Positions 5,164-50,140 of a DNA stretch of 64,000 nt are shown one piece after another. The DNA lies in NCBI GenBank assembly GCA_004431415.1, contig QPMI01000201.1, positions 1 through 64,000 of the forward strand. Reading direction: 5' to 3'. This DNA is from Cyanophora paradoxa CCMP329 (lineage: Eukaryota; Plantae; Glaucophyta). A model generated the notes under the pieces. It did no database searches and had not been told where the DNA came from. It worked only from the letters and a program-made list of their open reading frames with translations. Each line of letters begins with the position of its first letter. The stretch's first letter is position 1. The translations under genes and the position numbers were made by a program.

Positions 5164-5175
5164 GAGCGCTGGAGA

Positions 5176-5482
5176 CGAGAGCCTAGAAAGAGAGGCTGCT
5201 GGGACCAACGCCTGCTGCCACTCGCCTGAGTACTGGTGCGCGCGTCGAAGGGGGGAGGGTGCAGTCCAAGTCGAATTTGCCAATTATGCGTGCCAGGTGA
5301 GCCCTCTACCCCCGAGGCTTCGGGCGGGTACGTGTGCGAGCGATGCAGAGAGTCCCGCACACGCGACGCGGCGAGGGGCGGAAGCTCGCGCACGACCGAG
5401 CGAGAGTGGCCGGACGAGGGGCCCGGCCCGCCCGGCCCGCGGTTATTTCGGGCGCCGAGTTCACACGACTGGATTGAAGTCA
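5176..5482. repeat. Copy 1 of a ~300-bp direct repeat (LCIB-like 5' UTR/promoter region)
   Basis: Colinear with 7464-7868. Shared blocks include CGAGAGCC, AGAGGCTG, CTGCTGCC, CAGTCCAAGTCGAA, CCAATTATGCGTGCCA, GAGCGAGAGTGGCCGGACGAGGG and GCGGTTATTTCGGGCGCCGAGTTCACA. Confidence 0.85.
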
Positions 5483-5593
5483 TATGAGGGAAGTCAAGCG
5501 CAGGCGGCAACTTCCACCAAAGCCAGCTATCCTAAGCAGCAGAACAACATCAGAACCAACCACCGCCCGCTTACACTTCACCAGCCTAACAAG

Positions 5594-7287
5594 ATGGCAA
5601 CGACAACAACAGGCCGTAGCATAGCGCAGCGTACGACAACTCGCCGCAACGCGATGTCGTCCCAGAACTCGTCTTCTTCCTCGCGGACTCGAGGGCAACA
5701 ACAGTCGCGTCATCGCGGTGCCGGCATGCGCAGCTCCAGAACCACCGGCGCTGCCGGCAAGGCCGCAGCTGTCGTCTGCGGCGGGGAAAACTCCGCGTCT
5801 GGTGATCGGGGCGGAGACGCCCCCATCAGCGGCGGCCCAGCTCGCCACGGCCTATCCTGCAGCGGTAGTGAAGACCAGGACGGTGAGAGGGCCGGCATTC
5901 TCGGTTTCGGATGCGGTCGTATCTACGACTTCAACCCGCGCGCAGCACTCGAGCTCGTGCGTACCTTGTTTCTCTCCACATCGCTGCTCCCCGCATTTCT
6001 GAAGGCCGCGGCAGCGCGCGGGGGCGCCTGTCGCCTGAGCCCCGGAAGGGGCGGAGGGCGGGGGCGACGTCGATCGTGCTCTCGTCGGACGCGGCGATCC
6101 GGTCGAACGCTCGCTCCGAGTCCATGCTGCGGGCCGTCCTTGAGAACGGCGGCCCTGCAGGTCCGCCGCCCGGCCCGGACCGGCTGCCCGCACACAACTT
6201 GCCTCTGACTGAGCGCGCGATGCAGGGGCAGGGGCGAAGAGGGGTCTCTTCTACACGAACTGCTTCGAGCCGCTCCGGGCTGTACCGGTGCTCTCCACCT
6301 CGGCGCGCCGCGTGCTGACGACTGAAAACGCCGGCGGCTCCTCCGTGCGCCCCGCGCCGCGCGGCTCCCGGGGGAAAACAAGGCGGCTTGTGTCCTCGCT
6401 GACGACCTCGCCGGGGCAGGAGTTTTCGGAGGCGCTCTCCTTCGAGGTCCTGCACCGCGCCTACAACGCCAAGCTCGTCGCCACCGAGATGGAGATCGCC
6501 TACTACCCCCTCGGTGCCCCGCCCCCGGCCCCCCGTGCTGCCGCGCCGCGCCCTCGGGCCCGCGCTCACGACGTTCCGGTGCACGTGCACAGGCTCGAAG
6601 CGGACGGACTACGTCGTGGAGATCCTGGGCAGCACGCTCGGCGTCTCCGTCTCTCGCGCCATGGCCCACCGCGGCGTCGTGCGCCCCGCCGCTCGCCCCC
6701 TTGTCGTCGCCGGCGGGGCCGACGGGGGCCGGCGGGGCGTGCAGTTCACGCCGAGCGACGCGCGGGCGCTCCTCTGGAAGAAGCTCTCCGGCGTCCAAGC
6801 CTCCACCGCCAACGGTCCGCCCCGCCCCTCCCCGCCCCCCCTGCGCCACCCCTTGCGCTCGCCTCGAAGGAGGGGGCGCCAGTGCTGCCTCGGGGCCTCT
6901 TCACGCGGCAGCTACTGCACATTTGGGCCCCCACGCTGCGCGTCGCCCGCATCGTACGTCCCCGCCGCGGCGCGCCTCAAGACCGGCAGTGACGGCGGCG
7001 GCCGGCGGGGCGCAGCTGCGGCGCGTGTACTGCAAGGACTCCGCCCTGAACGCCGTCCGCGGCTCCACTGTCGTCCTTGTCACCGTCAGCGGTTCGCGCC
7101 CGCCCCCGCGCGCCCCCGTCTGCCCTTTGCGTTCGAGCCGCCATTCGCAGGTGCCTCGGCCTCCGCCGCGGCCGCCGCTGCGACCAAGGCCGACGTGGCC
7201 GCCTGGCGGGCAGCGCACTCCCAGCCCTCGCCCAAAGATCTCATCTTCTACCAGCACGCCAAAATCGGCCAGTGCTCCGTCATGTGA
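5594..7287 (+). CDS. AAC4-like protein (Dictyostelium AAC-rich mRNA clone AAC4 family), multi-exon
   Basis: Spliced core RVLTTENAGGSS/EFSEALSFEVLHRAYNAKLVATEMEIAYYPLG/SKRTDYVVEILGSTLGVSVSRAM...LLWKKLSGV...QLLHIWAP matches the NAGGSS..SE.LSFE.L / TDY / GVSV.RA pattern I recall for this family. Start is uncertain because the N-terminus is low complexity. Confidence 0.65.
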
Positions 7288-7463
7288 TTCCGCTAACGTT
7301 CGGTTGCGAATCCCTGCGGCCGCTTCTTTAGCTAAGAGCCCCTCGGAGCTGAATCGTACACGTTGCAATTGCACTCTGATATTGATGTGAACCGTTGTCC
7401 TTTTTATGCGTTTTGGCTTCAGCACGCTGACATGTACAGCAGCCCGCCAGGCTCGCAGATCAT

Positions 7464-7868
7464 CGAGAGCCCAGAGTACTGGTGAGATCTAGAGGCTGTA
7501 CATGCATGTACATGTTGGGAACGTCGGACCAACTTGGCAACGTCTGCTGCCGCTCGCCCGACTCGGCGAGATATATAGTATACGTACTAGTATACGTACG
7601 CGTACGCGCGTACTGGTACCGGCGCGCGTCGAGGGGCCCGGGGGGGAGGACCGGGTGCATGCGCAGTCCAAGTCGAACCAATTATGCGTGCCACGGTGAG
7701 CCCCCTACCCCCGAGGCTTCGCCTAGTCGAGCGGGTACGTGTGCGAGCGACGGAGAGAGTCCCGCACAACGCTCGCAAAAGGCCGAGCGAGAGTGGCCGG
7801 ACGAGGGACCTGGCACGCTCAGCCGGCGGTTATTTCGGGCGCCGAGTTCACATGGCCGGATTCAAGTC
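7464..7868. repeat. Copy 2 of the direct repeat, expanded by palindromic insertions
   Basis: Same blocks as 5176-5482, interrupted by inserts such as AGATCTAGA, TGTACATGCATGTACA, GTATACGTACTAGTATACGTACGCGTACG, GGTACC, GGGCCCGGG and GCATGCGCA. Confidence 0.85.
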
Positions 7869-7977
7869 ACATTGGCTCAAAAGAGGGGGCGGGGCGAGCA
7901 GCGAGGGTGCAGTGATGGACGAGACGGGGGCGCGGGGCGGGGCGAGCGGGCGCGGCGGCCTGCGGCGGGGCGTGGGC

Positions 7978-9487: not shown

Positions 9488-12400
9488 ATGGCGAGCTCTG
9501 CCGAAGGCACCCGGGCAGCCAGGAGGGCGTTGCGCTGCTGCTGGCCGGGTTCAACGCAGAGCGTAGCGCCCTCCCCAACAGCGGCCAGGCGCGACGATGA
9601 GACCAGACGAAGCATACCGACCTCGGCACGGGGGCCCGCTTCAGGCAGCGATCTCACTTCTAAAGCAGCTCCGGCCTCCCCAGCGCCGGCGGCAAGTTCC
9701 TCGTCAAGCGTTGCACAGGCTGCTGCAGGCGCAGACAAGGACAAGGACAAGCCAGAAGACAGTGCGCTCCGTCTGTTACTTCGTGTTGCCTAGCTAGAGA
9801 TCACAGCTAAGCGATTGTCCCCGTTTGCAGAGAAGACATGGAAGCAGCGGATAAAGGACAAGTTCCACTGGCCTACGCTCCAGCCAGGGTCGCCTTTACT
9901 GAAGCATCTCATGCTTGCCCTCTTTGTCTTTACAACATACAACGCTGTGATTATACCTTTTCGATGGTGCAATCCATGAAGAGGCCGCGGTGCCCCTCGC
10001 TGAAGCGCGCCAGGTCGTTCCTGCGCTCGAACAACGAGCGCTGGATGATCATCTTCAACATCATTGACTACACTGGCGACCTTCTCCTGTGGCTGCACCT
10101 GGCCCTGTCGCTCAACTCAATCTGCTACCACGAGGACGGCACGCCGCAGCCCCGTTCCTTTTTGCGGGCTCGCGATGACGCCCCCCCGCAGGCCTCTTCA
10201 TCACGGAGCGCGCAAAGGTCTCCGCGCTCCTTTTACGCCGCGCAAGCGCAGCCTGCTGAAGCGGCGCCAGATCCGCAAGCACTACCTGCGCTCTCACGCC
10301 TTCATCTACGACGTCGTCTCCCTCCTCCCCCGTGCGCCGCGCCGCGCCGCCCAGCAGCACCGGCCCGCACGGCCGCCGCCGACGGGGCGGCAGTGGACTT
10401 CATTGCGTTCCTCGCCGGCTACGAGAACTATGTCTATCTGCGGTGCGCGCGGCACGCCGGCCGCACCGGGAGCGCTCAGGCGGGGCGGGGGGCAGCATGT
10501 TCCGCTTCGTGCGGCTGCCGCAGGCGATGGGCGTCTTCGGCATGTGGGAGTACGGCGCCGTGCGCCCCGCCCGCCCCGCCGGGCGGCCGCTGCCCGGGCC
10601 GGCACTGACGGGGCGTGGCGGCGGGGGCGTGCAGCTCTACTCGAACGCGATCCGGCTGGTGAAGTCGCTGATGATCCTGACGATGATGATCCACTGGATC
10701 TCCTGCCTCTACTACATGGTCGTCCTCGCCGACGGCTTCGGGTGCGGCCGCGCCAGGCGCCCCGCGGCGGGGCCGGCTGAGCGGGGGGGGGGCGGGGCCA
10801 GGACGTCGTCGTGGGTGCTCTCGGACGACCCCATCGTGCTCGACAACCTCGACGTCCAGTACTTCCGCTGGCGCGCCGGCCCCCGCCCCGGCCCCCGCCC
10901 CGCCCCCACCCCACGTGAGGCCTCTGCCGCAGCGCCATCTGGACGATGCAGGTGCTGCTGCAGCAGGTGGACGGGACGCCGATGACGCGGAGCCAAGTCT
11001 ACCTCACCGTCGTCGTCATGTTCATCGGCCTCTCCGCCTTCGCCGCCTTCGTCGGTCCGCCCTCCGCCCCGCCGCCCCAGCACGGGCCTGCGGGGCCCCG
11101 CGGGGCCGCCCCTGAGGTTGCGCAGGTGGCATCTCGTCGCTGATCACGAACATGAACGCGTCGGAGGTGGTCTTCCGGCAGAAGATGGACGTCCTCTCGC
11201 AGTTCATGGCCTACCGCCGCCTCCCCGCCTCCCTCCAACAGCGCATCATGAAGTCCGCCCCCGCGCGCCCCGCCTCTCGCCGCGCGGGGCCGGTGCGAGT
11301 GGGTGCGGGGGGTGCGCGCAGCTACCAGGACTACATGTGGCGGCGGCAGCGGGGCCTGGACGACCGGGAGATCCTGGGGGACCTCCCGCCGCACCTGCAG
11401 AACGAGATCGCGCGGTACCTGAACCGGGAGATCCTGCAGAAGGTCCCCCTCTTCTCCAACGCCGACACCGGCTTCCTCTCCGAGCTCGTCACCCGCCTCA
11501 AGCCCCGCCTCTACGGCCCCGGCGAGTACATCGTCCGGTCCGCCCCCGCCCCGCCCCGCCCCACTCGGGGCCGACGCGACGGGCCGCGGCAGCTACGGCG
11601 AGGTCGGGCGCGAGATGTTCTTCATCTCGCGGGGCGTCGTGGAGGTGTGCAGCGAGGACGGGCGGGTCGTCTTCAAGTGCATGGCGGACGGGGAGTACTT
11701 CGGGGAGATCGCCCTCCTCTACTCGGACAAGCGCACGGCGTCGGTGCGGGCCAAGGGCTACTGCGACCTCTTCACCCTCAACCGCGAGGACCTCGAGGGT
11801 GCGCCGCTCCACCCGCGCCGCCCCACCCCCACCCCGCTCCCCGCCGAGGCCGCTCCTCGCAGCCGTCCTCGTCGACTACCCCGAAGTGCACGCCATGCTT
11901 CGCGAGGTCGCCCGGTCCGCCCCCCCGGGCCCCGCCCCGCCCGCCCCCGCGTCCCGGGGCACCCCGCGAGCGGGGCCGGGGCTTGCAGGTCGCGGATGAC
12001 CGGCGGGCACGTGCCCCAAAAGAAGCCGGCGAGCGCGATCATGAACGGCAACACGGGCTCGGCGCGCTCGCAGATCCGCCGCACCTCCTCCGTCACTGCC
12101 ATGGGCAACTCGGTCGGCCGCGGCACACTCTCCCGCTCCTCCTCCTTCGTGCGCCCGCCCTGCACGCCCCGCCCCGCCCCGCGCGCCCCGCGCCGACGCG
12201 GGGCGGGACCTCGCAGAACGACCAGAACCGGATGGCGCAAGTGCAACGGGCGCAGTGGGCGTTGCGGACTATCCGGCGGTTCATCCACGCGTGGATCCTG
12301 ATCCACCGGAGCCGCAAAGCTGGCAACGCGACGGCGGAGCCGCTGCGGATGCTGCTCGACCGCAAGGCCTCCTCCGAGTCGATGTCGCACCTCCTCGGCG

Positions 12401-14391
12401 GGGGCACGGCGACGCCCCCCGCGGGGGCATCGCCGGCAGAGAAGGGCAAGGGCCTGGCGGCGCTCCTTCCGCAGTCGCGCTCCTTCACGAGCTCGAGCAA
12501 GGCGGCGCAGCGCCCCGAGTCGGGCTCGCTGGCCCGCCGCCGCTCCAACTCCCTCCCCGCCGCCGACCCCGAGGTCGCCGCCAACGCCGCCGCCGCCGCC
12601 GCCGCCCTCGCCGCCGCCGCCAGCGCCACCTCCCCGCCCCGCTCCCCCCGCGCCGAGGGCCCCGCCGAGCGCGCCGCCGCCGGCCTCTCCCTCATGACAC
12701 CGGCGGGGAAGCTGGACCTGCCGCTTCTGCCGCGCTCGCGGCACAAGTCGACGCTGAGCCCGATCCCGTCGCCCAACACGACGGCGCGCCACTTCGAGCT
12801 GCAGGAGGTCGAGGAGGAGGGGGAGGACGAGGAGGAGGAGGAGGAGGAGGCGGGGGCGGGGCGGGAGGGCGAGGAGCGCCCCCCCGCGCTCGTCTCGCAC
12901 CGCTCCGTGCGCTCCACCGCCTCGCGCAACTCTGTGCGCGAGGCCCCCTCGCGCTCCTCGGCCGGCGAAGCCCCCGCCTCGCCCAAGCCGGGCATCCTCT
13001 CCGCCGCCCGCTCCCTCGCCGAGGAGCCCCTCTCGCCCGTCAGCGCCACCCCCGTGCGCCGGCTGCCCGCGCGCCCCGCCCTCCGCTTCCCCTCGCCTCT
13101 CATTTGGCCCCGCAGTCGCTGAACGGGCGGGAGGGCGGGAAGGGCAAGGAGGGCCTCCTTTACGCCTCGGCGGTCATGACGATGCTCGGCCTCGGCTCCA
13201 ACAACCCACTCCAGCCCGCCTCCCGCTCCTACTCGGCCCGCTCGCGTGCGCCCCTCCCACACGCCCCGTGCGCACCTCCTGGCCGCTCACACCGCCACCC
13301 CCGCAGCGGAGTACGTGGTGCTCGGGGGCGCAGAGGCGGCGACGCGGCAGTCGCCGAAGGGGTCCCAGGGGCAGGCCTCGCGGGAGCTCCCGCCCTTCCT
13401 CCCGGGCCAGCAGCGCGGCTCGCCACGGGGGCGCACCGTCTTCGAGGCGCCGAGCCTGCCGCTGGGCCTCCCCGGCGCCGACCCCGTCCCCTCCCTCATC
13501 GAACTCTCCGAGCGCGAGCCGTACGTGCCGCGCGCCCTCTCAACGGGCCCCCACACGGGACCCCACTCCCGCGCCGACTCCCCGAAACTCGAGCCCCGCC
13601 GGCCCCGCGCCGAGCCGCCCCTCCCCGGGGCCCCTGCCGGGGCCCCCGGGGCAGCGCCGGCCCTCCCCGCCCTGCTCGCCAACGTCAGCCTGCGGCGCCG
13701 CCTCATGGAGCGCGAGGCGCCGGCCCCCGTGCCCCTCAACCCTGAGCTGCCAACTTCCTCCCCGGGGGCCGGCGGCCCAGGCGCCGTCCCCTCCATCCCC
13801 ATCCCCCTCATGGTCATCCCGCCCTCGCGCCCCGAGAGCGATCGCACCGCCCGCACTGGCCGCTGTGCGCCGCCCCGCCCCACCCCGTCCTGCCCCGCCC
13901 CGTGCGCTGACTGTCGCAAAGCCATCAAGTTCAGCAACACCGTCTCCCTTGTTGGCGACTCGGACGACACGACCACTGCCCCCGCGCCCCGCGCCCCGGC
14001 TGCGCCGGTGCCGCCGCTGCCACCGCTTTCGCTGGCGGCCACAATGGACGCGGACACGGAGACGGTGCTTGCCTCCGCAGCGCGGAAACTTCAGCAGCTG
14101 TCCGACGATGTCCTCGCCGGGCGCCTCCCCTCGGGCGATGTCGCCAGCCCGCCGGGCGACACCACCAGCCCCCCCGCCGCGCAGCAACCTGTGCAGGGGA
14201 ACCCCTTCACAGGCCCGGCGAGCTGGACTCGGCCGCTCAGCCCGCGTCTAGGTGACTTCGGCATAGCCGGTGGGTCGGGCGGAGGTGGTGGAGGCGCTAA
14301 AACAGGAGCTCCGCTCGCGCCCCTCGGCAAATCCCTCAAGAAGATCACTCTGCCGCCTCCCACGGCTCTCGTAGAGGAGGACGAGTCGTAG
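9488..14391 (+). CDS. Cyclic-nucleotide-gated/HCN-like cation channel (6TM, C-linker, cNMP-binding domain, long low-complexity tail)
   Basis: Exons encode YNAVIIPFR, IRKHYLRS.AFIYDVVSLLP, S4-like YLRMFRFVRLPQ, IHWISCLYY, C-linker FRQKMDVLSQFMAYRRLP...LPPHLQNEIA and CNBD GEVGREMFFISRG...GEYFGEIALL...RTASVRA. Start codon uncertain. Confidence 0.9.
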
Positions 14392-14666
14392 GGCAAGCTC
14401 ACGTTCCCTGATCGTTGTGGTTCAACAGCGAGGTGCAGGAGCAGGCCTGCTGTCCAAGTAGCTCTTATTCGAGAATGCACAGTCAACTTAGCCAGCTTTA
14501 GCTACCATGCACGAGTTCCATGATTCTCTTGTAGAAATATCTTTTTCAATGTCCTTTAAAACATATGTGCATGTCAGTTTATAATTATTATACAATAGAT
14601 ATGAGAATCTTTTGATCCTGGATCCGATGATGATAGTGCTCGATATGCTCCACAATGCGTGTCATG

Positions 14667-17600
14667 TCATGGACAAAGAGGAGAAGGATTCGAACACTGA
14701 ACTGAATCATTGAATCGAACAGTCAGCCCAGCAGCGGCATTCTCAAGACGGCCATGCTCCGCACTTGAGGGCCACCAGCTGCAGGCGTGGGCCCCGAGGG
14801 CGGAGGTCCCATGCCCTGTGCGACGAGAGATCTCCTCCTGCCGGTCTTGTGTGTGAGCGGCCACAGGAGGGGCCGCGGGCAGGGCGTCTGACCTTTCTTC
14901 CGCGGCCTCGACCTGCTCGGTCTGCCACGTGGGGGACGAAAAGGCGAAGCCAGTCGCTGCACCGCCGCAGTCAGCGCCGCGGGGCGCGGGGGAGGAGCCG
15001 GGCGCACGGAAGGCCTGCTTGAGGGCGTTGGTGGAACGGGAGCGCCAGTACTTGACGGAGCGCACGGCCGTCACAGCGACGCCCCAGCGCGACCACGCCA
15101 TAGCCGCCCGCATCGCCACCCCCCCCTCCGGCCCCCGCCGCCCGCCACCGCCGCCGCCGGCGCGCGCCTCGGGAGGCGCTGCGCGCGAGGCAGAGCGCCC
15201 GAGGCCGGCACCGGAGGCCTCCCATTGCGGCCTTGGCGGCGAGGAGCTCGGAGCTACGGCGCATGGTCGGGCCGGCGCTGCCGGCCTCCTCACCGCCCTC
15301 GCGCTACGGCGCATGGTCGGGCCGGCGCTGCCGGCCTTCTCACCGCCCTCGCGCAGCGCGAGCCGCTGGAGCTCGCGGATGATCTCCAGGTACGTCGGGA
15401 AGTAGTTCGCGGTAATGCTGCGCGCACGCCCCGGACACGTCAGGCGCCGGCGCCGCAGAGCGAGGCAGATCAGAGCGCAGCAGAGGGGCACACTATTTGA
15501 AGCAGAAATCGGGAAGGTTGGCGACGACGGGGACGAGGAGGGCGCAGAGCCAGAAGGCTGCCGTCTTGAACATTGCGTACGCGAGGAAGTAGAAGTCGGA
15601 GGAGATCTTGAGCATCGCCGAGTAGACGATGACGAAGAGGAACCAGAAGGCGACCGAGCCCCAGGTGAAGAGGTGGTTCAGCCACGTCCAGTGCCGCGTC
15701 TCCAGGCAGATCTTGTACGTCACCGTGAGCACCAGGCAGAAGTTGACGACAGTGCCCAGGTAGAAGAGGTCCCCGCCCGTGCCGTCCGGCAGCGGCGCGT
15801 CCTTGCCGACGGCCCCCACGCACATGAAGTAGACGACACAGGAGTGGGCGATGGCCTGGGCGAGCCAGACGGCCATGCGCTTGGCGTTAAAGTCCATGCC
15901 CCACTGGCCGGCGAGGTACAGCCGCGGGTTCTCCTCGCTGCTCGCCGCGCTGACGTCCTGGTCCAGGATCCCCACGAGGATGATGGGCGCCAGAGTGAAG
16001 CCGACGTTCCAGAAGGCCCCGAGCCACGACTCGAAGAGCGTCGTCCCCGACTTGCCGTTGTAGAAGCCGAAGTAGAAGAGCGTGAGGACGAACGAGATGT
16101 TCTTGTAGAAGCTGTACAGGATGACCTTGGAGACCCGCTTGTAGTTCCAGCGCCCGTGCACGAGGAGGAGCCGCTTGAGGAAGCGGAACTGGGCGATCGC
16201 GTAGTCCGCGGCACGCACCGCCTGCATGCCCTCCTTCCCCGAGATGCCGATCCCAATGTGGGCCTCCTGGATCATGGTCACGTCGTTGGCGCCGTCGCCG
16301 ATGGCGAGGGTCATGGGGGTCGGCTTGACGTTGTCCTTGACCATCTTGACGACCTGGGCCTTCTGCAGGGGGCTCACGCGGCAGGCCACCACTGCCTTGC
16401 AGATTTTGCATATCGTCAGGAAGAGCTCCATGAGCTCCTTTTCCTCCATCACGAAGCGCAGCGCCTTGCCGTCCACGATCACCGCCAGGTTCTCGCTCTC
16501 GAACCCGATCAGCTCCTTGTACTGCTCCCGCTTCGAGAGCAGCGACTCCCGCACGTCCTTCTTCGTCTCCTCGCTGCGGGCGGGCGCGCACCAGCGCCAT
16601 CAGCGCAGCGGGGGAGCCGGCGGCGCGAAACGCACTTGATGACGATGAGAACCATCTTGTCGGTGAGGAGGCGGCAGGAGAAGCCGATGTTGATCGCCGT
16701 CTCCACCTTGTCGCCGGTGAGGACCCAGATCTTGATGCCGGCCGCTGCGAGCGTCGCGATCGCGTCCGGCACGCCCTCCTGCAACTTGTCCTCGATGGCG
16801 GTGGCCCCCACGAGGACGAGCTCCTTCTCGATGAGCTCGGCCGCCGCGTCGAGCTTGGCCTCGCGCCCATCGAGCGCCGTGGCGGCAGCGAGGAAGGTCC
16901 GGGACCACTCGTCGTACTCGGCCTGCGCGATCTCCCGCCGCCCGATCACGAGCGTCCGCAGGCCCTCCGTCGCGAAGTCGTTCAGGTGCTCCAGCAGCGC
17001 CTCCTTGCCGGCGGCGGCGGCGTTCAGGCGTTCGAAGATGACGGTGTCGGCACCCTTGGTGTAGAGCACGATGCGGCCCTCCGGGGTGCGCACGATGACG
17101 GACATGCGCTTGCGGGCCGAATTAAACTCGCACGTCGCGAGCACCTCGTAGGTCTCCTCCCGCCCGAACACGGTGATGGTGACGGAGCGCGCCGTGCGGC
17201 CGCGGAAGCCGTAGCCGAGGCACTTGGCTGCTGTCATGAGGGCCCCCTCGTCGGGGCTCGACGCCTGGTACACGATGTGTGCCGCGTCATGGCCCCGCTC
17301 CGGGATCACGGTGTGGCACACCGCCAGCGCACGCAGAAAGTCGTCGATTCTCTGCGCAAAGCGCCCCCGCTCGCCTCAGCGCCTTCCCGACGGCCCAAAC
17401 CCCACGCCGGGGATGCGGCGGGGGCGCACGGCGGCGTTCTCGTGGGCCTCGCGGACGTGCCCGAGCAGCCGTGTGTCAGCGAAGTCGAACTGCGCGGCCA
17501 CGCCGGCGTCAGAAGCTGCCTGGCCTCCACGGGGGGCGGGGGGCGGGGTGGGGCGTGCGCGCCTTGCCGGCGGGGTCCTGCTCGAAGACGGCGGCCCCCG

Positions 17601-18066
17601 CGGGGATGCGTTCGGCGCCCGGCACGGGGACCGTCGCGCGGCCCGGGAGAAGGCTGGAGCTGACAGGGGGGCGGGCGGGCTGCTTGAGGAGGGGACCCTC
17701 GTCTTCGAGCTGCCCGTACGCGACGCCCCCAATCGAGCACTTCTTGAACTCCATCTCGTTGCGCGTAAGCGTCCCCGTCTTGTCCGAGAAGATGTAGCGG
17801 ATCTGCCCGAGGTCCTCGTTGAGGTTCGACGTCCGCGCGCTCGCCGGCGTGTCGCTCTCGTCGTGATACATCGTCCCGTCGCTCTCCATGAGGCGCGCTT
17901 GGTAGATCTTCACCAGCTCCAGCGAGACGTACAGCGAGATCGGCACCAGGTTGTTGTACAGTATCAGGAACGTCACCCAGCCCTGCAGGCCCCGCCCCCG
18001 CCCCAGCGTCGGCCGGGGTGCGGCGGAGGGGCAGGGGGGGGGAAGGGGCGGGGTTGGGCACGGCGG
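14667..18066 (-). pseudogene. P4-type ATPase 3' fragment (copy A, 5'-truncated)
   Basis: Near-identical to 24831-28090; contains [27 protein letters not shown] and TGFAFS. Lacks the N-terminal exons and has a ~50-bp internal duplication at ~15252-15352. Confidence 0.8.
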
Positions 18067-18071
18067 TTGCG

Positions 18072-21831: not shown

Positions 21832-21836
21832 TTGCG

Positions 21837-22975: not shown

Positions 22976-23435
22976 ACGGAGCGCGGTCAGCCCAGGACCT
23001 GTTTACGGTGTTCGTTTGCCAGTCTTCTGTCCTGGGCCGTTTCTCGCACTCGCTGATTTGTATGACAGGCATGTCGGGCTTATGTCAGGCATACGTAGTT
23101 AAAAGATGATAGTTACCGTAGTAATGCAGCTGCTTCAGCGAGCGGCACCGATATCGGTGTGAGCGGCACCCACACGGGAAGGACCCCCTTCCCCTTTCCC
23201 CACTTGGGGGTGTTCGGGTGCCCACCCTAGGCAAAAATGAAATGTCCACACCTCCCAAAACCCAGGTTTTCTCGCCGGATCCTAGCAAGGCATGTCCCTA
23301 GGAGTCCGGAAACGTGGTCCGGGAGATCCGGGTCCCGTCGGGTCGACCAGGAATTCGAATGAGGAATAACACATTAAAAATATTTATGCAAAATGCAATC
23401 TAGAGCCTCACCAAGTTGCGGTATGTCAAGCGGAC

Positions 23436-23503
23436 TGATGTCATAACATGTCATAACTGCGTACGAGTATGATGTCATAACATGTCATAACTGCGTACGC
23501 GTA
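23436..23503. repeat. Two 34-bp tandem units containing ATGTCATAAC x4
   Basis: TGATGTCATAACATGTCATAACTGCGTACG(A/C)GTA starting at 23436 and 23470. Confidence 0.85.
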
Positions 23504-24133: not shown

Positions 24134-24165
24134 GGCTTCTTGATTCAGGTCTACGCCTAGCTATA

Positions 24166-39020: not shown

Positions 39021-39085
39021 GCCGATGCCGTGCGCTGGTGGCCCCGGGGGTCCCAGCGCGCCTAGCCTTTTTTGAAAGACTCTTT

Positions 39086-39114
39086 CTTTGTACCCCAACC
39101 AAGGGGGTACAAAG
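39086..39114. promoter_or_regulatory. 11-bp inverted repeat in a 100-bp divergent intergenic region
   Basis: CTTTGTACCCC-AACCAAG-GGGGTACAAAG lies between ATGs at 39020 (-) and 39121 (+). Regulatory role is inferred. Confidence 0.45.
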
Positions 39115-39120
39115 CGCAAG

Positions 39121-41511
39121 ATGTTCGTGCAGCCGGCTCCGCTCGGCCCGTCGCGGCGCAGCTTCTACACCGGTGGAGATGCTTTACACGTCCTTCCGGC
39201 GCGGTCGCGGGCTGGTCCCGCGAAGCGACGGCCGGCTGTCTCGCACGTACGCGTGCGCATGGAAGCAGCGTCGAATGGGGCGGCCGGGGCCCCGGCCAAA
39301 AAGGATTTCCGGTTCGTCATGTTGAAGCGCACTGCAGGCCTGGCTTAACAGCGCGGCTTGCGACAATACGCGCAAACCGCCACGCGCTCGCGCACGCGCC
39401 CCGCAAACGGTCTCTGACGCGTCCCTGGGCAGCGTGATCCTTCTCACGGGCAAGGGAGGCGTCGGCAAGACCAGTGTGGCCGCCGCAACCGGTTCGCGTG
39501 CCGAGTCTGCCGACGTCACGGGGCGCGTGCACCCTGAGAAGAGCGCGCGCAGGGCTGCAGTGCGCGGAGCTGGGATACAAGACGCTGTACGTGCTCTTTG
39601 GGGTCGTCCTCGCCCGCGCGCTCACCGCAGGCGCGCGGGGCCGGGGGGCGCAGGGTGCTCTCGACGGACCCGGCGCACTCGCTGGCTGACAGCTTCGACA
39701 TGGAACTCTCGCACCAGCCGCGGCAGGTGGCGGAGCGGCTCTACGGGGCGGAGCTGGACGCCATCGTCGAGCTCGAGATGAACTGGGGCAGCGTCAAGCG
39801 GTCCGCCCCGCCCCGCCCCGCGCCTCGCGCACCATGAACCGGGCAGCGCCGCAATCGTCTCTCCGGGGGCAGGTACATCACCGAGGTGCTGCAGGCGCGG
39901 GGCCTGGAGGGCGTGCGCGCCGAGGAGCTCGCCATCCTCCCCGGCATGGACGAGATCTTCGGTGCCGCGCCCCCGCCGCCGCCTCCCGAGGCACCTGACG
40001 CCGGCGCGGCGCAGGGCTCGTGCGGATGAAGCGGGAGGCGGACAGCGGGGAGTTTGACGTGCTCATCGTCGACTCGGCGCCCACCGGCACCGCCCTCCGC
40101 CTCCTCTCCCTCCCCGAGGTCGCCGGCTGGTCCGCCCCCGCCCCCGCCCCCGCCCCCACCCCCGCTCCGGCCTGCCTGCGTCGCCCGCCCCAGAGGCCCG
40201 ACGGGGCGGGCATCGGCTGGGGGCAGGTACATGCGGCGGTTCTACAAGCCGCTGCAGGGGATGGCGAACGTGCTGAACCCCGTCTTCGACCCCCTCTTCA
40301 AGCAGGCGCGCCCCCCGCGCCACGCCGGCGGGGTGGCGCCGGGCTGAGGGCGGGGGTGGCAGGTGACGGGCTTCTCGCTGCCCTCGAAGGAGGTCATGGA
40401 CGTCCCCTTCGACCTCTACGAGGTCCGCGGGGGCCCCCGGGGGCGCGCGGGGGAGCCCCGGCCGGCGCCGGGCCAAGGCGGGGCGGGGGGCGGGGGCAGG
40501 ACATCGAGGCCCTGCAGCGCGTCCTCTGCGACACCGCTAAGACGACCGTCCGCCTCGTCACCAACCCCGAGAAGATGGCCCGCCCCGCCCCGCCCCGCCC
40601 CGCCCCGCCCCGCCCGGGCCCGAGGCGCCTGACATGCGTACCCTCCCCCCCTCGGCAGGTGATCAAGGAGTCGCTGCGGGCGCACGCGTACCTCTCGCTC
40701 TACGGCGTCGCCACCGACCTCGTCGTCTGCAACCGTCCGCCCCCGCCCCGCCCCCGCCGCGGGCCGGGGGCCGGCGGCGACGGGCGGGCCCCCGCAGGCG
40801 TGCTGCCGGAGAGCGTGCAGGACCCGTACTTCGCGCGCTGGAAGGAGGCGCAGCGCGGCTACCGCGAGGAGATCCGCGAGGACTTCCACCCCCTCCCCGT
40901 CAAGGCCCGCCCCCCCGCGCCGCCCCCGCCTCCCCCGCCGCGGCTGGGAGGGAAGCGAGGGGGCCGGGGGGGCAGGAGGTGCCGATGTTCGGGGAGGAGC
41001 TGTGCGGCCTCCCCGCCCTCCACCGCCTCCGCGAGACCCTCTACCCGGGCTCCGAGGACCCCACCCAGGCGCCCCCGCCCCCCGCCCCCCAGCGCCCCCC
41101 GGGCCCCCGCCCCGCCTCACGCCCAGCGCCGCCCCGCAGGTCTACCACAAGGAGGTCACCATGCGCGTCTCGCCCGCCGAGGCCGGCAAGGGCTACTCCC
41201 TCGAGGCGCGCCCCGCGCTCGGCGCACCCCGCCCCGTGCCCCGCCCCTCTCACGCCTCGCGCTGGCAGGTCTTCCTGCCGGGCATCCCCAAGAGCGACGT
41301 AAAGCTCACCAAGACAGGCGACGAGCTCAACATCCGCATCGGCGCGCCCCCTCTCCCGCCTCCGCCGAGCGCGCGTCGCCCCCGGGGGCCCTGAGGGGGC
41401 CGGGGCGCAGGGAACCACCGGCGGAACCTGGTGCTGCCGCAGGCGCTGGCGGGGCTCGAGCCGAAGGGCGCGAAGATGGACGAGGACTACCTCAAGATCT
41501 CTTTCGCCTGA
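39121..41511 (+). CDS. arsA: ArsA/GET3/TRC40-family ATPase, cyanobacterial type with C-terminal HSP20-like domain and N-terminal transit peptide; 15 exons
   Basis: [91 protein letters not shown]. Confidence 0.92.
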
Positions 41512-41699
41512 GCACGCTCTCCGCGGAGCCGCCGGGCCGCCCCGGCCCCACCCGCCCCGCCGCCCCGGCCCAGCCGGCCGGCCGGAGGCTGGGCCCATGG
41601 CCATGGCCCCGGTCAGCGGTCCAGGCATCGGGCAACTCTAGTATTTTGGTCCTCACCGTGGCCGGCCCCGTGACCCCGAACCTCGCGATCGTGCACATA

Positions 41700-42800
41700 C
41701 CGTGGCAACCGCACGTCTACCACGACGTCGACCGCACTCGAGTCGCGATCGATATATCGGCCGTCGGACGTCGACGCGCGCCCCACACACTTTCGATACA
41801 CCACTTTAAGGACCTTATAAGCTTGCATTAATCTATAATAACTGTCTGCTGCTGTTCATGGTCATTCATATGTCAACGTTGATCATGATCATGATCAAAT
41901 TGACTCAGTGACAATTGCAAGTTGCAACATAAACGTTAACCGCGCCCGGCCGGCTCGATTGCAAGACTCTTAGAGGCTAGAGCTAGCGCTAGCCTAGTTA
42001 ACAATTGAACACGTACGGGTGACATGCCGCTTGAATGCAATTGATGAACGTCAACAATTTCGGAATTCGGGGTCCGGACCGATCCGGTGGGCAGGCCCGG
42101 CGGGATCCGGATTCCGGATCCGGATATCGAGTCCGACGGTCTAGATATCGACATCTATCTGCCCTGCATGCAGCTGCAGCTGCCAGGCTCAGCGGCTGTC
42201 GACGTCAGGCTGGCCGCATCGATATCATTATCGATATCATGGCATCATGATCATGGCATGTCGACTCCCGATCCGGTACAGACTCCGGGAATTCGAATGC
42301 CGTGACGTGCACGTGTACATGTCGCAGACTAGCTATAGTACTGCCGCCTGCAATTTAGCTATAGGTGACCGTCGGACGTCGACCTAGATCTAGAGCTAAT
42401 TTCAAGTTTTATATAATTATAAGCCTTGAAGTGACCCGCCGGGCCGGTCATGATCATGCATATATATGAAGCTGATCATGATCATCATGAAGTAGTGAGC
42501 TCGAGGCTGATCATGATCGATACTATGATATCCAGTGTACCAGTGTACGTATACATGTGTGATCATGATTAGGATTGCGGAAATTAAATTTGAAATAAAG
42601 ATCGCGATCAATCCGCGACCGGATTGATCGCGAGTGCCGAATTCGAAATGCTGATATATCGATTTCTACAGCTCGAAGCTTGCAGTTGAAATTAAATATT
42701 GCCAAGTTAACAGAAATAGAGGCGGCGGCCACGATGTCGACACGTTTGCCTTGCATGCACACAGCTTAGATCTAGATCTAGACCATGGCCTGGCCCCGCG
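41700..42800. repeat. Non-coding tract saturated with overlapping 6-bp palindromes
   Basis: TGATCATGATCATGATCA, CAATTGCAA, AACGTTAAC, GCTAGCGCTAGC, GGATCCGGA x2, CAGCTGCAGCTG, GAATTCGAA x2, TTATAATTATAA, AGATCTAGATCTAGA. Confidence 0.85.
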
Positions 42801-43239
42801 GCTGGCCAGCAGCTGCAGCGACGGCGCTCCAAGGCTTGAGGCCCATCGTCGCCTCGTCCCAAAACTCGCCCCCCTGCGCATGCGCGGTGCCGGCAGAAAT
42901 TAAGGGTACGTTTGCATGCGCATGCGCAGTCACTAGAATTCCGGCATCAGCTCACGAAGGTGGAGCGGACGTATTCCCGGATCAGCTGCGTGATCATGGC
43001 GAGGTCGACGTTGCCCGCCTGGATCCTGATCATGAGAATTGCGAAAGTCAACGTTCGACAACGATACTCGAGAGCGACCACAACAGCAGATCGAATGGGG
43101 CGCGGACATTGCCGTCGTGATCGCGAGGCGCTGCTCCGACACCTTCGTGGTGACCTCCTGGTAGCGGTCCCACAGCGAGGGCCCGGGCCCGCTCCAGCTA
43201 GCGCTGGCCACGGCCGGCGGCGGCGCGCACGCCCCGCCC

Positions 43240-44600
43240 CCATGCGCAGCGGCGCCGCGACCGGAGACGTCCGTGCGCGCGCGCTTCGATCGCGAGCTGC
43301 GCTTCGCTCTTAACTCTAGGCGACTACGGGGTCGCCTGTGCGAGATCGATATCCGGAGGGGGATGGGCGCACCGCTGCCCCTGATCAGTACCAGGCCCGA
43401 CCGCCGGAGCCGCTCCGGGGCCCGCATTCGGGCTCGAGCTCGACGCGTGCCGGCGCCCGGCGGATCCGAGGGCGCCCGCGTCCGGGGCCCGCGCCGGCGG
43501 AGGCGCAGAATTTGAAGGCGGCGCCGGCGGAAGCGGCCGAGGCGCAGAGTTCGAAGGCGCGGCCCGAGCACGTGCACCCGTACCTGCCTCGAGCTCGCCC
43601 TCATCGCTAGAGCTCGATGACGAGCTCGAAATCCACGCGTACGTTTCCCTGAAGAAGGTGCCCACCGATCGCGATCAGAGCTCGACGCAACGGAGCTCGA
43701 AAAAAATCATTTTTTGCAAGCGCACCCATTTGGATTACGATCTTGCGCGCCATTCTCCATTTGCATCGCTGCAGTATTACTGCTACTGTTTTGGAGATCT
43801 ATAGCTCGCGATCGTTTCGCAGCTAGCTCCTGCCTGCGCGCCGTGTTCTTCTCCGCCGCCCTGCGCGAACGGAATGAGGTTATGATAAGCCCGCGGCCGG
43901 TGCAGCAGAGATCGGCCGCGGCGGCGGGCAGTCGTCGATCGCGAGCTGAGCTGGAGGAGGCGCATGCACGCACGCTGCGATCTTCTTGCGGTTCTTCTCG
44001 TACATGGCCTTGAGCTCGGGGAGGCCTCCGGGGAAGTAGGACTGGAGGCGCGGGATGACGTGCTCGTCCATGTACTTGACGTCCAACAAGAGCCGCGTCG
44101 CGGTCGCCTTGTCGACCGAGGCCGACTCGCGCTGCTTCGCCGCGAGCTCGTACCTGCAGCCAACAATGTGAGTCAGCGCCAATTTCTCTGACTCGTTCTC
44201 TCGTTTAGTTTAGAAGCTTAACTTCCCGCCCACCCCCCCCCCCTCTCTCCCCCCCCCCCCCTCCCCCCTCCCTCCCCTCTCCCCGGGACGAGGCTAGTGT
44301 GCACATCAAATCCATCCTCTCGAGGAACGGCTTCATGTAGGACGACAGGCTCTTGACTTCCTCAAGCAGCGTGCGCGCTGTGCGGAAAATGGAGCGAGCG
44401 ATCTCAATGGTTATTTGGCCCTGCCCCGGATCAAATGAAATCAGCTGCAGAGAATCTCTTTGCAGATCGAGGCCGCAAATGTGTACTCACTTTGTATGAT
44501 CGAAGGAACGCCGTCTTATCCCCGTTGAAGAACACGGTGGTGGCATAGGAGTCGGTGATCATGTGGTAGCCTGTCGTACCGGACATCGACTGCGCTTGTG
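43240..44600 (-). pseudogene. Decaying gene of unknown family, paralogue 1
   Basis: Residual exon RYELAAKQ...VIPRLQSYFPGGLPELKAMYEKNRKKIAACVHAPPP with splice-like sites and broken frames. Paralogous to 44780-45660. Confidence 0.55.
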
Positions 44601-44779
44601 CACGGCGCCCGCGCCTGAGTATCAGGAAAAACGAAAGAGCACTGAGGGGCGTGTATGTGTCCATACTATATAGCTATCTATACGCAGCAGTAGACTGCAG
44701 CTGCAGGATATATATATCGATACGCACCCTTTGGGGGCGACCAGTAGCTATAGGCGTCCCTGAACGTCCGCTGGCCGCT

Positions 44780-45660
44780 GGTGCGCCCTTCGCAGCCGCG
44801 GGATCTCCGGGCGCGCGCTTGGAGCTGCGCTTCGGTTTGAGCTTGAGGCGTGCACGGGGGCGACGAGTACTGCGCGGGATGGCGGGCGCACCGCTTCCCG
44901 TGACCGGTCGAGGCCGCTGAGGTCGGCGCCATTTGGAGGCCCGCATTCGGGCCCGAGCTCGACGCTTGCGCGTCGGATCCGAGGGCGCCCGGCGCCGGCT
45001 CCGGCGGAGGCGCGGAATTTGAGGGCGCCGGCCCTGCGTGCGCCTCGCCCTCCTCGCTCGAGCTCGACGACGAGCTCCCAGCGGCCCCCCTCGTCGCACT
45101 TGCGCTGATGGTACTTGCTTGCTCCTGCTTGCGCGCCGTGTTCTTCTCCGCCACCCTGCGCGAACGGAATGAGGTTATGATGAGGCTGCGGCCGGGGCAC
45201 CAGATCTAGAGATCGGCCGCGGCGGCGAAAAGTCGTCGATCGCGAGCTGAGCGGGAGGAGGCGCATGCACGCACGCTGCGATCTTCTCGCGGTTCTTCTC
45301 GTACATGGCCTTGAGATCGGCGAGGCCACCGGGGAAGTAGGTCTGGAGGCGCGGGATGACGTACTTTTCCGCGTAGATGATGTGTATACACAGGCGTGCT
45401 GCAGCTGCCTTGCTGATCGAGCTCAAGGCCGATTCGCGGTCCGTTGTCAGGCCGTATCTGCAGCGTTCAAGCTAATCATATGATGAACGATCGCGACGGC
45501 CACGCGCGCGGGCGCACATAATTTCCATCATCTCGAGGACGGCTGTCGATCGCGCGTACTGAATCAAATGCTCAAATAGCTTGATGTCCTCAAGAAGAGG
45601 GCGCGCCGCGATGAATACGGTGCGAGGGACGATGCTACTCAATTCGCCCTGCCCCAAACG
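44780..45660 (-). pseudogene. Decaying gene of unknown family, paralogue 2
   Basis: YVIPRLQTYFPGGLADLKAMYEKNREKIAACVHAPPP; frameshifts and stops upstream. Confidence 0.55.
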
Positions 45661-46101
45661 CGATCAAATCAGAGACAGTCAGATATCGATGAGATGTTAG
45701 GAGATTCTCGTATCGATCTTGAGGGTTTAAGCTCTAGATCATAGTACATGCTATGATATCGATATGAGAAATGATGAATGCGGAGGACGCAGCAGATCGA
45801 TCGTGCGGTGGACACAGCAGATCGAATTGTTAACATTTAGCCGTTGCCTTGCTCTAAATCTTGCACGCGTCTCAGTGTCACAGATCTCGCTAATATTTCT
45901 AATCATTAGAGATTCCAAAATCAATGTGCGCTCACTTCATATGATTTGAGATACGCTGCCTCATCCCCTCCGAAAAATGTTGCCGTGCCATAAGCTTCGA
46001 CGTATCTGCGTTTGTCCATTTTCTGCATTTGTGCGGGGCCCGTACCGGGGAATCAGGGGAAATGAAACGAGGAATGGCAAGGTCTCAGGCCCTATATATA
46101 G

Positions 46102-47100
46102 CTAGCTATAGGCGGCATGCGCAGGCTGCACCTCTTTTCGGGGACGCTTCGGCTGCCCATCGCGACGTCCACGCCTTGGTGCTGCCGCAGCTGCAGGAGC
46201 CGCGTCCGGGGCGACGGCGGAGGCGGCGGCCGCCTGCGCCGTGTGCTCGTCGCGCAGCTCCTCCCGCATCAAGCCGATGATGGGCGCGAAGCGCGGGTCG
46301 GCCCCCAGGCTCGCGTCGTCCGGGGCCTTCTCCCCGCGCTCCAGCGCGAGGAAGAAGAGCGCGTCGCACACGAGCGCGTGCCCGCGGCTCTCCAGCCGCA
46401 GGTGCTCCTCCAGCGCGCCCTTCACCGCCTGCCGACGCCCACGTGCGCGGGGGCGCGGGCCGGGCGTTCAGTGAACACGATTGTCGAACGCATGTCGAGC
46501 TAGCGATCGTGTGCATGGGCATACATGCGCACCACATCCGTGGGGAGCCTTTTGAAGACGCCGGGGGCCCGCAGCTGCAGCAAGGCGAGATCTTCCGCCG
46601 GCACGGACTCCGGGGCTCCTGCTTTCTGCAGTACCTCCTTCGCTAGGAAGCTGCGAATGCCGGCGCAGGCCACGGCGCCTCCCGCGGCCGCAGCTGCAGC
46701 CTCGCTGGCGGGCAGCTTGCTGACGCCGGACAGGAGCCGATCGAGACCCGCGGGTGCATTCTCCTTCTTCTCGGCGCACGCGGAGAGAATCCGCAGTCGC
46801 AGCGCATCGCTTATCGCGAAGCGGAAACTGATGCTGATGGCGCCGGCCATGGACACGCTGGCGATGCGTTCAGCTGTATCGGATGTCCAGCCGCTTCGCC
46901 ACCATCCTCTTGGGGCGTTCCGCAGCGAGCCGGCAGCCGCCCAGAAGCTTCACCGTGCTCCGAGGTGCTGGCCGGAGGCGCCCGCACAGCGCGGCCGGCG
47001 CCGGCCGCTCCAGATCTATGTTAAGCGCGCGAAACTTCTCTGCGCATGCAGCACTCTGCAGCTGCCAGCTGCTGATCAAGGGGTACGGCGAAAAGTTATC
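46102..47100 (-). pseudogene. Probable pseudogene of unknown helical protein
   Basis: Coding-like ORFs 46500-46856 and 46102-46425, separated by a TAG inside the palindromic run CGATCGCTAGCTCG and a probable intron. Confidence 0.45.
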
Positions 47101-47325
47101 TTCCGGGGTACGGATCACGACCGTCGGAGTACGGGTACCGGTCACGACCGTTTGTCGGGGTAAGCTTAAGGCTAACGGCTGCAGCGCCGTGCATGCGCAT
47201 ATGCGTGAGACGTCACGGCGTCGACGGATCCCGGACGGACACAGCGAATGGGCCGGCCAGTGCAGCGCTACGGCTGTGGCTAGCGCTAGCTATATAGGCC
47301 GGCGGCGGCCCTAGGGGCCCTAAAG

Positions 47326-50140
47326 CTAGGACGCGGAGCTCGAGGGGGCCGGGGTGGGGCACTGTGCGAGGGCGGCGCGGAGGGCGGCACAGTGGGCCTC
47401 GAGGCGCTGGGCGGCGAGCTCCCAGAAGACCCAAGAGCGGAGCTCGACGCCGAGGGCGGCACGGAAGCTCTCCTCGGCGGGGCGCGCCCCGAGGCCGGCG
47501 AGCAGCGCGTCGAACTCGGCCCCGAAGGCCGCGCCCCGCTGCTGCTCCAGCTCCAGCAGCCCGCACGCCGCCAGCCGCCCGAAGCGCTCCGCGAAGCCCG
47601 CCCCCGGCTCGCCCAGCGCCGCCAGCCAGACCGCGCCCAGCGAGGCTGCCCCGCAGTCAGGGGCGGGGCGGGGCGGGAGGGGCGGGCAGGGGGACGGACT
47701 GGGGAGGGCCGTGAGGGTGTCCTCGCCGTACCACTCCCGCAGGCTCTGCGACCCGCGGGCGATCAGCGAGGGGCGGGCTGGGGGCCCCGGGGTGGGAGGG
47801 CGGGGGGGGCGGGCCTGCTCCATGAGGGCGGGGAGGGCGCCCTCGGCGGCGACGGCGGGGACGCCCTCGAGGCGGAGGAGGGCGCGCTGGAAGTCCCAGA
47901 GGGCGGGGCGGTAGAGGCCGAGGTCGGCGGCGCGCTGGGCGCCGGCCCAGGCGAGGGCGGCGCGCTCGGGGGCGGCGAGGGCGGGGTCGGCGAGGGCCCC
48001 CTCGAGGGCCCGCAGCTCGAAGAAGGAGGCCACCGCGTCGCCCAGCGCCGGCCCCTTCGCCCCGTACCGCGTCCCCAGCACCCCCGCCTCCCGCCGCCGC
48101 TCCTCCAGGTAGCTCTGCCTGCGCCCGCCGCTCGCTTGCGCCCCAGCGAGCGCCGCCCCGCGGCCGGCGAGCGCACCCGACGGCGCGGGCGAGGGTCGGC
48201 AGCGCGAGGGGCCTGCGGAGGGGGTCGGGGGCGCTGGCGGGGGCGGGCAGCGGGGCGGACCCCAGGGCGGCGGAGGGGAGGGCGATGTAGGCCGCCCGCG
48301 AGCGGGTCATGAGGTGCACGGCGGGGAGCCGACCTCCGCCGAGACCCCTGCCGCCCCTCAGCGGCCGCCAGCACGGGGCGCGGGGCGGGGCGGGCGCACG
48401 GAGGCGGCCGGCGGCGAGGGCGGCGGGGAGGTCGCGGCCGAAGTGGGGCCGAGGAGGGCGGCGAGGCGCGCGAGGGCGGCCTCGGGGCGCGCCTCGGGGA
48501 AGTCGGCGGGGAGGGCGGCGGGGCGGCGGTGCGAGAGCGCGAAGTCGCGCTCGGAGAGGGCGCCCCGTACAGCGCCGGGCCGGCGGCGCGCAGCAGGCCC
48601 CGCACCGCCTCCCGGCAGCGCGCCTCGGCGAGCGCCACGCCCTCCGCCGTCTCCCGCCCCACCAGCGCCTCCTCCTCCGCCCCGCGCGCCGCGTCCGGCG
48701 CCCCCAGGCCCCGCGCGACGTGCCCCACCTCTGCCCCGCATGCACCCCGTCAGACGGGAGCCGAGCGAGGGCGGGGGCGGAAAGAGCAAAGCCTGGGGCG
48801 GGCCGGAGAGGAAGAAGGCATAGACGACGACGTGCTCCGGCGGGGGCGCCTCGTTCGGCAGGTACCTGCTCGCCCGCCGCCGCCCCGCCCACACCTCGAT
48901 GCCGAGCCGGGGAGGAGCAGGCAGGGGTGTACCCCATCTGGGCGGCAGCGGTGACGTCCTGCATGCTCTCGACGACCTGCGCGGGGTCAGCTGCGGGGGC
49001 GGGGCGGGGCGGGGCGGGGCGGGCCTGGCGGGCGTCGTTGGGGAGGCGCTGGAGGACGTCGTCCTGCGCGAGCGCATGCAGCGCCTGCCGCCGCCTGCCC
49101 CGCCCCGCCCTGCCTCGTCGGCCCCGGCCCCGGCGCCCGGGCGGGGCGGGGCGCGCACGCGCGGCCGAAGAAGAAGCGGAGGTGGAAGGCCGCCTCCTCG
49201 TGGTTCTCGCCGGGCCCCGCCAGCTGCCTGCGCGCCCGCCGCCGTCGCCCGGGGGCGCGGGGGCGCGGGGGCGCGGGGGCGCGGGGGCGGGGCGGACGCG
49301 GCGAGGGCGGCGAAGGCGTCGTCGCGGAGGGTCAAGTCCCCCGCCATCGCCCGCAGCGTCGTTGCCCGCTCTGTGAAGCCCTGCGGCCGCCCTCAGGCCC
49401 CTCTCTGCCTCCCGCGCCCCTCACTCCGCACGCGCGCACGTTGAGGGCCCCCGCGACGCGCTCCTCGAGCTCCTCGCGCGCCACCAGCTGCGCCGCCGCC
49501 GCCAGGTCACTGCACACCCCGTACGCCTCGAAGTACTGCTTGAGAAGGCCACCCATCTCGCCGAGCAGCGGGAGGAAGAGCGCCGGCGGCAGCTCGCCCC
49601 CGTGCGCCCTGTGCATCTCCTGCGCCGCCGCGCCCCGTCGGAAATCTAACTGCAACGATAACAAAGCGCATGCATATGGGATGGAGCTCGAGCGCACCTC
49701 CATGCGGCCGGCGAGGTCGTCCGATGCTTGCTCGAGCGCCCGCCCCACTTCGTCGATGTACGCAAGGTCCTGTGGACCGCGCGGCTCGCCGGCGATGGCG
49801 CACGCCTCAGCGCAGGCGAGCGAACCCGCTCAAAGGCCGGGTCCTCGCCGTCCGCCAGCTGCGGGTACTCGGCCAAGCGCCACTCCGCATCGACTGGCGC
49901 CGACGTCGGCTCCGTCGCGAGCGGCCGGCGCGGAGCCGCTCGGATGGATGGCGCTGGGAGAGCGCGGCTCGCGTATGCGGCTTGCACAGCCGCGCGGGCC
50001 GAACTGGCGGGCGCGATGTGAGCATGCCTTGCGCCGGCCGCGGAGATCGGCCGCGCGGCGCCAATGTGCGCCTGCGAGGGAGCGACGCTCGCCGCGCTCC
50101 TCCAGCAGCGCCGGAGGCCCCGGAGCGCCTGCGTATGCAT
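47326..50140 (-). CDS. Hypothetical Ala/Leu-rich protein with mitochondrial-like presequence, multi-exon
   Basis: MHTQALRGLRRCWRSAAS... followed by spliceable exons ending ...RSWVFWELAAQRLEAHC...SSSAS*. No family recognised. Confidence 0.55.

Follow-up and report, generated by a model that had tools for sequence, protein, structure and literature searches.

What kind of mutation replaces a three-base word by three copies of itself, the middle one inverted, and where does it act? The question is raised by a 64,000-nucleotide stretch of the genome of the glaucophyte Cyanophora paradoxa CCMP329 (contig QPMI01000201.1, positions 1 to 64,000; this whole stretch is the window in what follows). We use X for a 3-base word and rc(X) for its reverse complement; a 9-mer of the form X-rc(X)-X is called a +6 scar, and the form X-C-rc(X)-G-X a +8 scar. 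The X-rc(X)-X signature is confirmed as real in the window. With a probability of about 0.72, we read these words as excision footprints of cut-and-paste transposons that make a 3-bp target site duplication (TSD), most likely of the CACTA/EnSpm type.

The window contains 232 X-rc(X)-X 9-mers, compared to 72–94 expected from Markov models of orders 1, 3 and 5, and the highest single simulation reached 125. For the non-redundant part of the window, local order-2 shuffles predict 82 +6 forms and 221 are found; for the segment 41600–47350 the same shuffles predict 5.6 and 97 are found (z about 24). An initial annotation, made from the letters of this DNA alone, had proposed such a stereotyped change of X to X-rc(X)-X; the counts bear this out, and the 9-mers that it quoted are all present at or close to where it had placed them. 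It had also described the change as a geometry and not a fixed motif, which agrees with the finding that 25 of the 32 seed classes are represented, i.e. X is of arbitrary sequence, with T favoured as the outer base (59 vs. 36, p = 0.0003). When X was varied from 2 to 6 bases and the spacer from 0 to 3, the 3-base word without a spacer was dominant and far above the other lengths; words of 2 or 4 bases show little or no excess, and most 2-base signals are sub-words of the 3-base form. The junctions X-rc(X) and rc(X)-X are perfect palindromes. One-mismatch +6 forms are enriched as well (187 vs. 89 expected), which indicates that the process has been running for a long time. Words of 5 bases number five against 0.8 expected, and several of these are GC-only or lie within nested scars. 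Two 5-base forms, at 7500–7514 and 42164–42178, are located inside nested scars; they could be a rare class with a 5-bp TSD or by-products of stacking.

A second class of scar, which the initial annotation had not noticed, carries two further bases. The AT-richer non-coding zones contain 15 words of the form X-C-rc(X)-G-X where 0.3 are expected, while the reversed form X-G-rc(X)-C-X was found only once (binomial p = 0.0005). Since each of these two forms is strand-symmetric, the asymmetry between them is real. At 16 collapsed +8 sites the neighbouring bases are not fixed, and therefore the C and the G derive from neither flank; they are best read as the residue expected from an element with 5'-C...G-3' ends. 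No bias was seen among the +8 seeds, in a small sample. Hybrids that carry only the C or only the G (+7) amount to nine, compared to 2.6 by chance and about 70 if the two ends were independent. The +6 and +8 geometries thus seldom mix, which probably reflects two element families or tightly coupled cutting. A hAT-type hairpin with a 4- or 5-bp TSD, including a 5-bp C-NNN-G target, was also considered and was rejected because the spacer bases are independent of the flanks. A separate form, X-G-rc(X)-X (counted together with its reverse complement), occurs 15 times against 2.6 expected, about six-fold chance, with sites at 41739, 41763, 41918, 42059, 42177 and 42371; it is predicted by neither class, and some cases overlap other scars.

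Could replication or repair write such words by template switching? The direct-inverted-direct order is the generic product of a double template switch, so that micro inverted triplications of this arrangement would be expected if synthesis briefly changed strands twice or snapped back in the manner of Pol theta. The few 5-base cases would suit this explanation, and the weak preference for an outer T could be that of a polymerase. Short template-switch mutations, however, vary in length, depend on homology and add no fixed bases. Here the length is fixed at 3 and not spread, the turn is made without a loop, and a C and then a G are added without a local template, with the reverse order nearly absent and the +7 hybrids rare. 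We therefore consider template switching improbable. It was one of three origins that the initial annotation had left unranked; uniform excision footprints, another of the three, are favoured by the length of 3, the freedom of the seed and the C/G class.

The scars are distributed very unevenly. If GC-only seeds are left out of the count, the density is 31 per kb at 41.6–43.0 kb and 8 per kb at 43.0–47.35 kb, compared to 0–0.9 per kb in gene-rich stretches and none in the body of the LCIB gene described below. The suggestion that the process acts on unconstrained DNA is upheld by this difference between spacer and gene bodies, and the best reading is that scars accumulate where selection tolerates insertions. 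The densest tract (41620–42680) comprises the 3' untranslated region of an ArsA gene and the spacer between two convergent genes, whose RNA contigs stop at 42019 and 42681. It holds 34 perfect +6 and nine perfect +8 scars, where shuffles give 0.6. Iterative removal of the perfect scars deletes 276 of its 1061 bases (26%), and eight scars emerge only once an inner scar has been removed, i.e. they are nested. In a second dense tract (47000–47350), eight +6 scars and one +8 scar make up 16% of the length. The window as a whole is intron-rich and has a G+C content of 71%; for the PacBio genome of C. paradoxa, 67.6% G+C, a mean intergenic distance of 770 bp and "little or no expansion" of repeats have been reported (PMC6704402). 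The ArsA/GET3-type ATPase gene itself (38900–41510, plus strand; Pfam PF02374) has short GC-rich introns, several of which apparently start with GC rather than GT, and its transcript contig extends to 42019, reaching into the scar-rich tract.

Iterated forms had likewise been pointed out in the initial annotation, and 15- and 18-mers of this kind do exist: six alternating triplets at 41880–41897, where two scars sit on a palindromic hexamer, and five triplets each at 42768–42782 and 42914–42928. They are as frequent as independent insertions predict, with 10 runs of at least four triplets observed and 10.7 obtained in a forward simulation of independent insertions at the observed density. Neither a special re-targeting nor slippage is needed to account for them.

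In which direction does the change proceed? The clearest case is the region upstream of an LCIB/C-family gene (3041–5163, minus strand), the coding exons of which are free of scars. The open reading frame (ORF) at 3026–4129 on the minus strand matches Pfam LCIB_C_CA, and its closest homologue is EukProt tig00000851_g4886.t1, a protein named in the manner of the C. paradoxa PacBio assembly (PMC6704402), in agreement with the host. Over 3041–5163, the longest piece that aligns without interruption is 98.6% identical, and the exons were placed by exact peptide words. The gene-linked copy of the upstream region (5170–5480) lies upstream of the start codon and serves as the empty reference, with no perfect scar in 5170–5345. 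An orphan copy of the upstream region and the first codons is found at 7340–7870, with no LCIB coding sequence downstream, and 11 perfect scars are present in 7480–7750. Rule-based collapse of the orphan copy, performed blind to the gene-linked copy, removed 72 bases and reduced the gap columns from 107 to 55. In the alignable part, nine orphan-specific insertions built by the rule stand against six substitutions (counted by eye).

Individual sites illustrate both classes. The +6 scar GCA-TGC-GCA (7657–7665) corresponds to an empty site at 5261–5263 and is indeed a +6 change, adjoined by a separate +5 insertion. A nest of four +6 scars (seeds GTA, GTA, AGT and ACG) occupies 7578–7606, and the gene-linked copy is without them. 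Among the +8 scars, CAA-C-TTG-G-CAA (7530–7540) faces one CAA in the gene-linked copy, CGA-C-TCG-G-CGA (7559–7569) faces one TGA, and a scar of seed TCG with one mismatch in its inverted copy (7719–7729) faces one TCG. GTG-C-CAC-G-GTG (7688–7698) is present in both copies, with one base lost in the gene-linked one, and thus predates the duplication. Two examples of the initial annotation fared less well. The 9-mer GGG-CCC-GGG (7634–7642) has the expected form, but relative to its empty site at about 5250 the net change is +7 with one substitution, and the GGT case at 7615–7622 is an insertion of only +4, which falls outside the +6 rule. Two pairs elsewhere in the window that it had listed are exact +6 indels, namely CAG-CTG-CAG (14776–14784), located in a recent 3.3-kb duplicate with the empty site at 24863–24865, and AGA-TCT-AGA (45202–45210), located in an intron of a gene referred to below as gene B, with the empty site at 43907–43909. 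The young 3.3-kb duplicate shows this one scar against 14 mismatches.

A 6-bp unit between direct repeats can be lost, and so the long form might be ancestral and the short form the result of slippage deletion. The palindromes might also be selected regulatory sites, as scars cluster near promoters and 3' ends. Deletion, however, is unable to raise the long form to 17 times its chance frequency, and the net direction is therefore insertion. The seeds are arbitrary, and it is the upstream copy of the functional LCIB gene that is without scars while the orphan copy gained them. Both ideas are very improbable.

That the scars arose during amplification or assembly, or by chance because the DNA is GC-rich, appears hardly credible. 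Homopolymer indels do occur between duplicates in the assembly, gene bodies contain many GC-only seeds by chance, and the library preparation and amplification of the sequencing runs are not on record. On the other side, an Illumina check, which bears on the artefact that the initial annotation had allowed for, showed that contigs from three DNA runs, each belonging to a different study, are identical to the window, with zero differences over 41500–43032, which covers the densest tract, and over most of the remainder of 41500–47400. One of these runs (X1) may be the source sample, and all of them look like one strain. Moreover, scars are common to old paralogues, have decayed by point mutation (the one-mismatch forms above) and avoid coding DNA, and therefore they do not stem from library preparation. 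In the poly-C tract at 44225–44284, the contigs from short reads are broken and deviate slightly from the assembly.

How could a transposon leave such uniform traces? We infer an element, hairpins on its flanks and the positions at which these would be opened. The element would insert at X, and gap filling would give X-element-X; on excision, the transposase would seal each flank as a hairpin, in the way that RAG, Transib, hAT and Muta1 do, and a host nuclease would open each hairpin 2–3 bases beyond its tip. As the same three bases stand on both flanks, the new 3' ends would be complementary at their tips, and pairing, filling and ligation would yield X-rc(X)-X. A cut exactly at the element border would result in the +6 class. 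If the first nick were placed one base inside an element that starts with C, a C would remain in each hairpin tip and X-C-rc(X)-G-X, the +8 class, would be formed. In a toy enumeration with a 3-bp TSD and hairpins opened (2,2), (2,3), (3,3) or (1,3) bases beyond the tip, pairing of the ends gave X-rc(X)-X in 88–95% of random sites; with a C in the tip, X-C-rc(X)-G-X was obtained in 93–100%, whereas with an 8-bp TSD none of the tested openings converged. According to this model, a 3-bp TSD may funnel repair to one product, which would account for uniform footprints here, unlike those of Ac/Ds.

Hairpinned flanks, their opening by the host and joining at microhomologies are established for hAT, Transib, RAG and Muta1 (PMC5499845, PMC5873905, PMC1978519). 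CACTA/EnSpm (CMC) elements are described as having 3-bp TSDs of any sequence, ends that start with C, and frequent excision that leaves footprints (PMC6379663). In the window, the inserted bases are bounded by both copies of a 3-bp target of any sequence; the +8 class contains an oriented C and then a G, one base only at each position, and the +6 class contains no element base. The fit of an any-sequence 3-bp TSD and of putative C ends to this description makes CACTA/EnSpm the most likely family. Membership of the scars among CACTA footprints is compatible with the description of these elements but unproven. For CACTA elements several footprint variants per locus have been reported, whereas the spacers here are saturated with scars of predominantly two exact forms.

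Several observations weigh against excision footprints. Within the 64-kb window, no filled site X-element-X was found. Terminal inverted repeat pairs with a TSD, of the kind that the initial annotation had looked to, and CAC...GTG ends with a 3-bp TSD gave only low-complexity chance matches in the window. Pfam analysis of 20 ORFs and exon pieces of the window revealed no transposase (ArsA and LCIB only). More than 100 scars without an intact element would mean that elements almost always excise, or that large inserts are strongly selected against because the genome is gene-dense, and this is the main weakness. Likewise, the runs over 41500–47400, where contigs show presence only, revealed neither a polymorphic 6-base indel nor a filled allele; this is probably due to all runs representing one strain. 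In addition, the genome is reported to have little repeat expansion (PMC6704402), published hAT and Pack-CACTA footprints are heterogeneous (PMC5873905, PMC6379663), and flank hairpins are assumed for CACTA by analogy.

Part of this evidence would be explained if no element were involved. The enzyme, either a DDE transposase (domesticated or orphan) or a nuclease of the host, might cut plain DNA, duplicate three bases, form hairpins and rejoin the ends. Such a genome-wide hairpin mutator (e.g. a domesticated CMC- or RAG-like transposase) would write both classes into accessible DNA at close to the substitution rate, and would be a main origin both of new spacer DNA and of protein insertions of two residues. 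It would agree with more than 100 scars in the window having no filled site or element remnant among them, with their extreme density and uniformity, and with the low repeat load reported for the genome (PMC6704402). By geometric reasoning, however, the product requires double-stranded X on both sides before the hairpins form, and a hairpinned intermediate that is left unfilled would restore or invert X but not triplicate it. The C and G that the +8 class carries in fixed order would also need a source other than the flanks. We regard an element-free mutator as unlikely, and excision of an element remains our preferred explanation.

Comparison with known systems narrows down the type of repair. 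The hAT elements Ac/Ds, Hermes and Tam3 share with the proposed process flank hairpins, palindromic insertions and microhomology joining (PMC5873905, PMC1978519). They differ in that the hAT TSD is 8 bp long and the palindromes vary in length and have the complement of the flanking base at their centre, whereas the repeated unit here is 3 bases, the +6 class has no central base and the C and G of the +8 class are independent of the flanks. In RAG and Transib, the nick is made exactly at the border; the Transib TSD is 5 bp and RAG joints are deliberately diverse. By comparison, the unit here is 3 bases, with five five-base cases against 232 three-base cases, and the product is uniform. RAG1/2 P-nucleotides and Transib also share with the proposed process a hairpin on the flank at the element border (PMC5499845), and the loop-less palindromic additions at the border are found in the +6 class. 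Judged from the sequence pattern, the process thus appears to resemble the excision repair through hairpins known from RAG, Transib and hAT. By TSD length the scars belong neither to hAT nor to Transib, and the palindrome centre also sets them apart from hAT.

In the literature covered, to which the classic footprint studies of En/Spm, Jordan, Idaten, Tgm9 and Ascot-1 did not belong, neither a description of this signature for Cyanophora nor one of comparably dense footprints was found. For single loci, the shape of the footprint may well have been recorded already. Jordan and Idaten of Volvox are algal elements with 3-bp TSDs, and Jordan revertants reportedly retain both TSD copies together with 3–9 extra bases; they differ from the scars here in being few selected revertants at one locus. 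What the window contributes is the test by rarity of hybrids, the model of convergence, the finding that iterated forms are not in excess, and two exons with in-frame insertions. If the words are scars, a process known from single mutable loci would be a leading type of mutation in this DNA. They could be counted and dated as traces of transposon traffic through a genome that has been called repeat-poor, and would provide a test of the old proposal that visits of transposons diversify promoters and proteins. The two exact classes would also predict the chemistry of CACTA-type cleavage, with flank hairpins and a first nick either at the element border or a single base within the element, for which no documentation was found.

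Can such insertions become part of proteins? Genes A (about 42.7–44.6 kb) and B (about 44.6–46.0 kb) are tandem, spliced orphan paralogues on the minus strand. They are supported by a run presumed to be RNA, whose contigs skip introns with GT..AG ends, and their spliced models were read exon by exon. One +6 scar of seed GCC (GC-only), additional to the pairs of the initial annotation, at 43449–43457 on the minus strand adds two codons in frame to gene A relative to gene B, with three mismatches nearby; the exon of gene A (43373–43647) has one frame open throughout, and the counterpart in gene B is two codons shorter at this position. A second +6 scar (seed CGA, 43287–43295, minus strand) opens the next exon of gene A, again in frame and with two additional codons. 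Gene B has GGA at the equivalent site (44821–44823), so that one substitution is needed, as the initial annotation had claimed; the scar starts at 43287 and not at 43284. Both scars fall into the low-complexity tail of a predicted protein without a Pfam match. The annotation's idea that the insertions could add residue pairs is thus supported for the predicted proteins by two exon sites with RNA support, although an effect on the protein is putative. Elsewhere in 42681–46030 (minus strand), exon borders are shifted between A and B, and in A the counterpart of sequence that is exon in B carries a stop as well as an AT-rich insert of 200 bp. Judged from read depth, the genome probably contains additional A/B copies elsewhere.

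The 3.3-kb duplicate belongs to a region (11180–28100) of near-identical segmental duplicates, which are 93–99.6% identical: 11180–12681, 18128–19585 and 21893–22862 form one group, and 14744–18066, 19580–21831 and 24831–28092 form another. These copies differ mostly by one-base homopolymer indels that resemble long-read errors, and the ORFs tried gave no Pfam match. An AT-richer unique block between the duplicates (22980–24830) contains a 40-bp satellite (23766–24025) and direct repeats of 34, 42 and 43 bp. This block could be the interior of a decayed non-autonomous element, though no paired ends were found for it.

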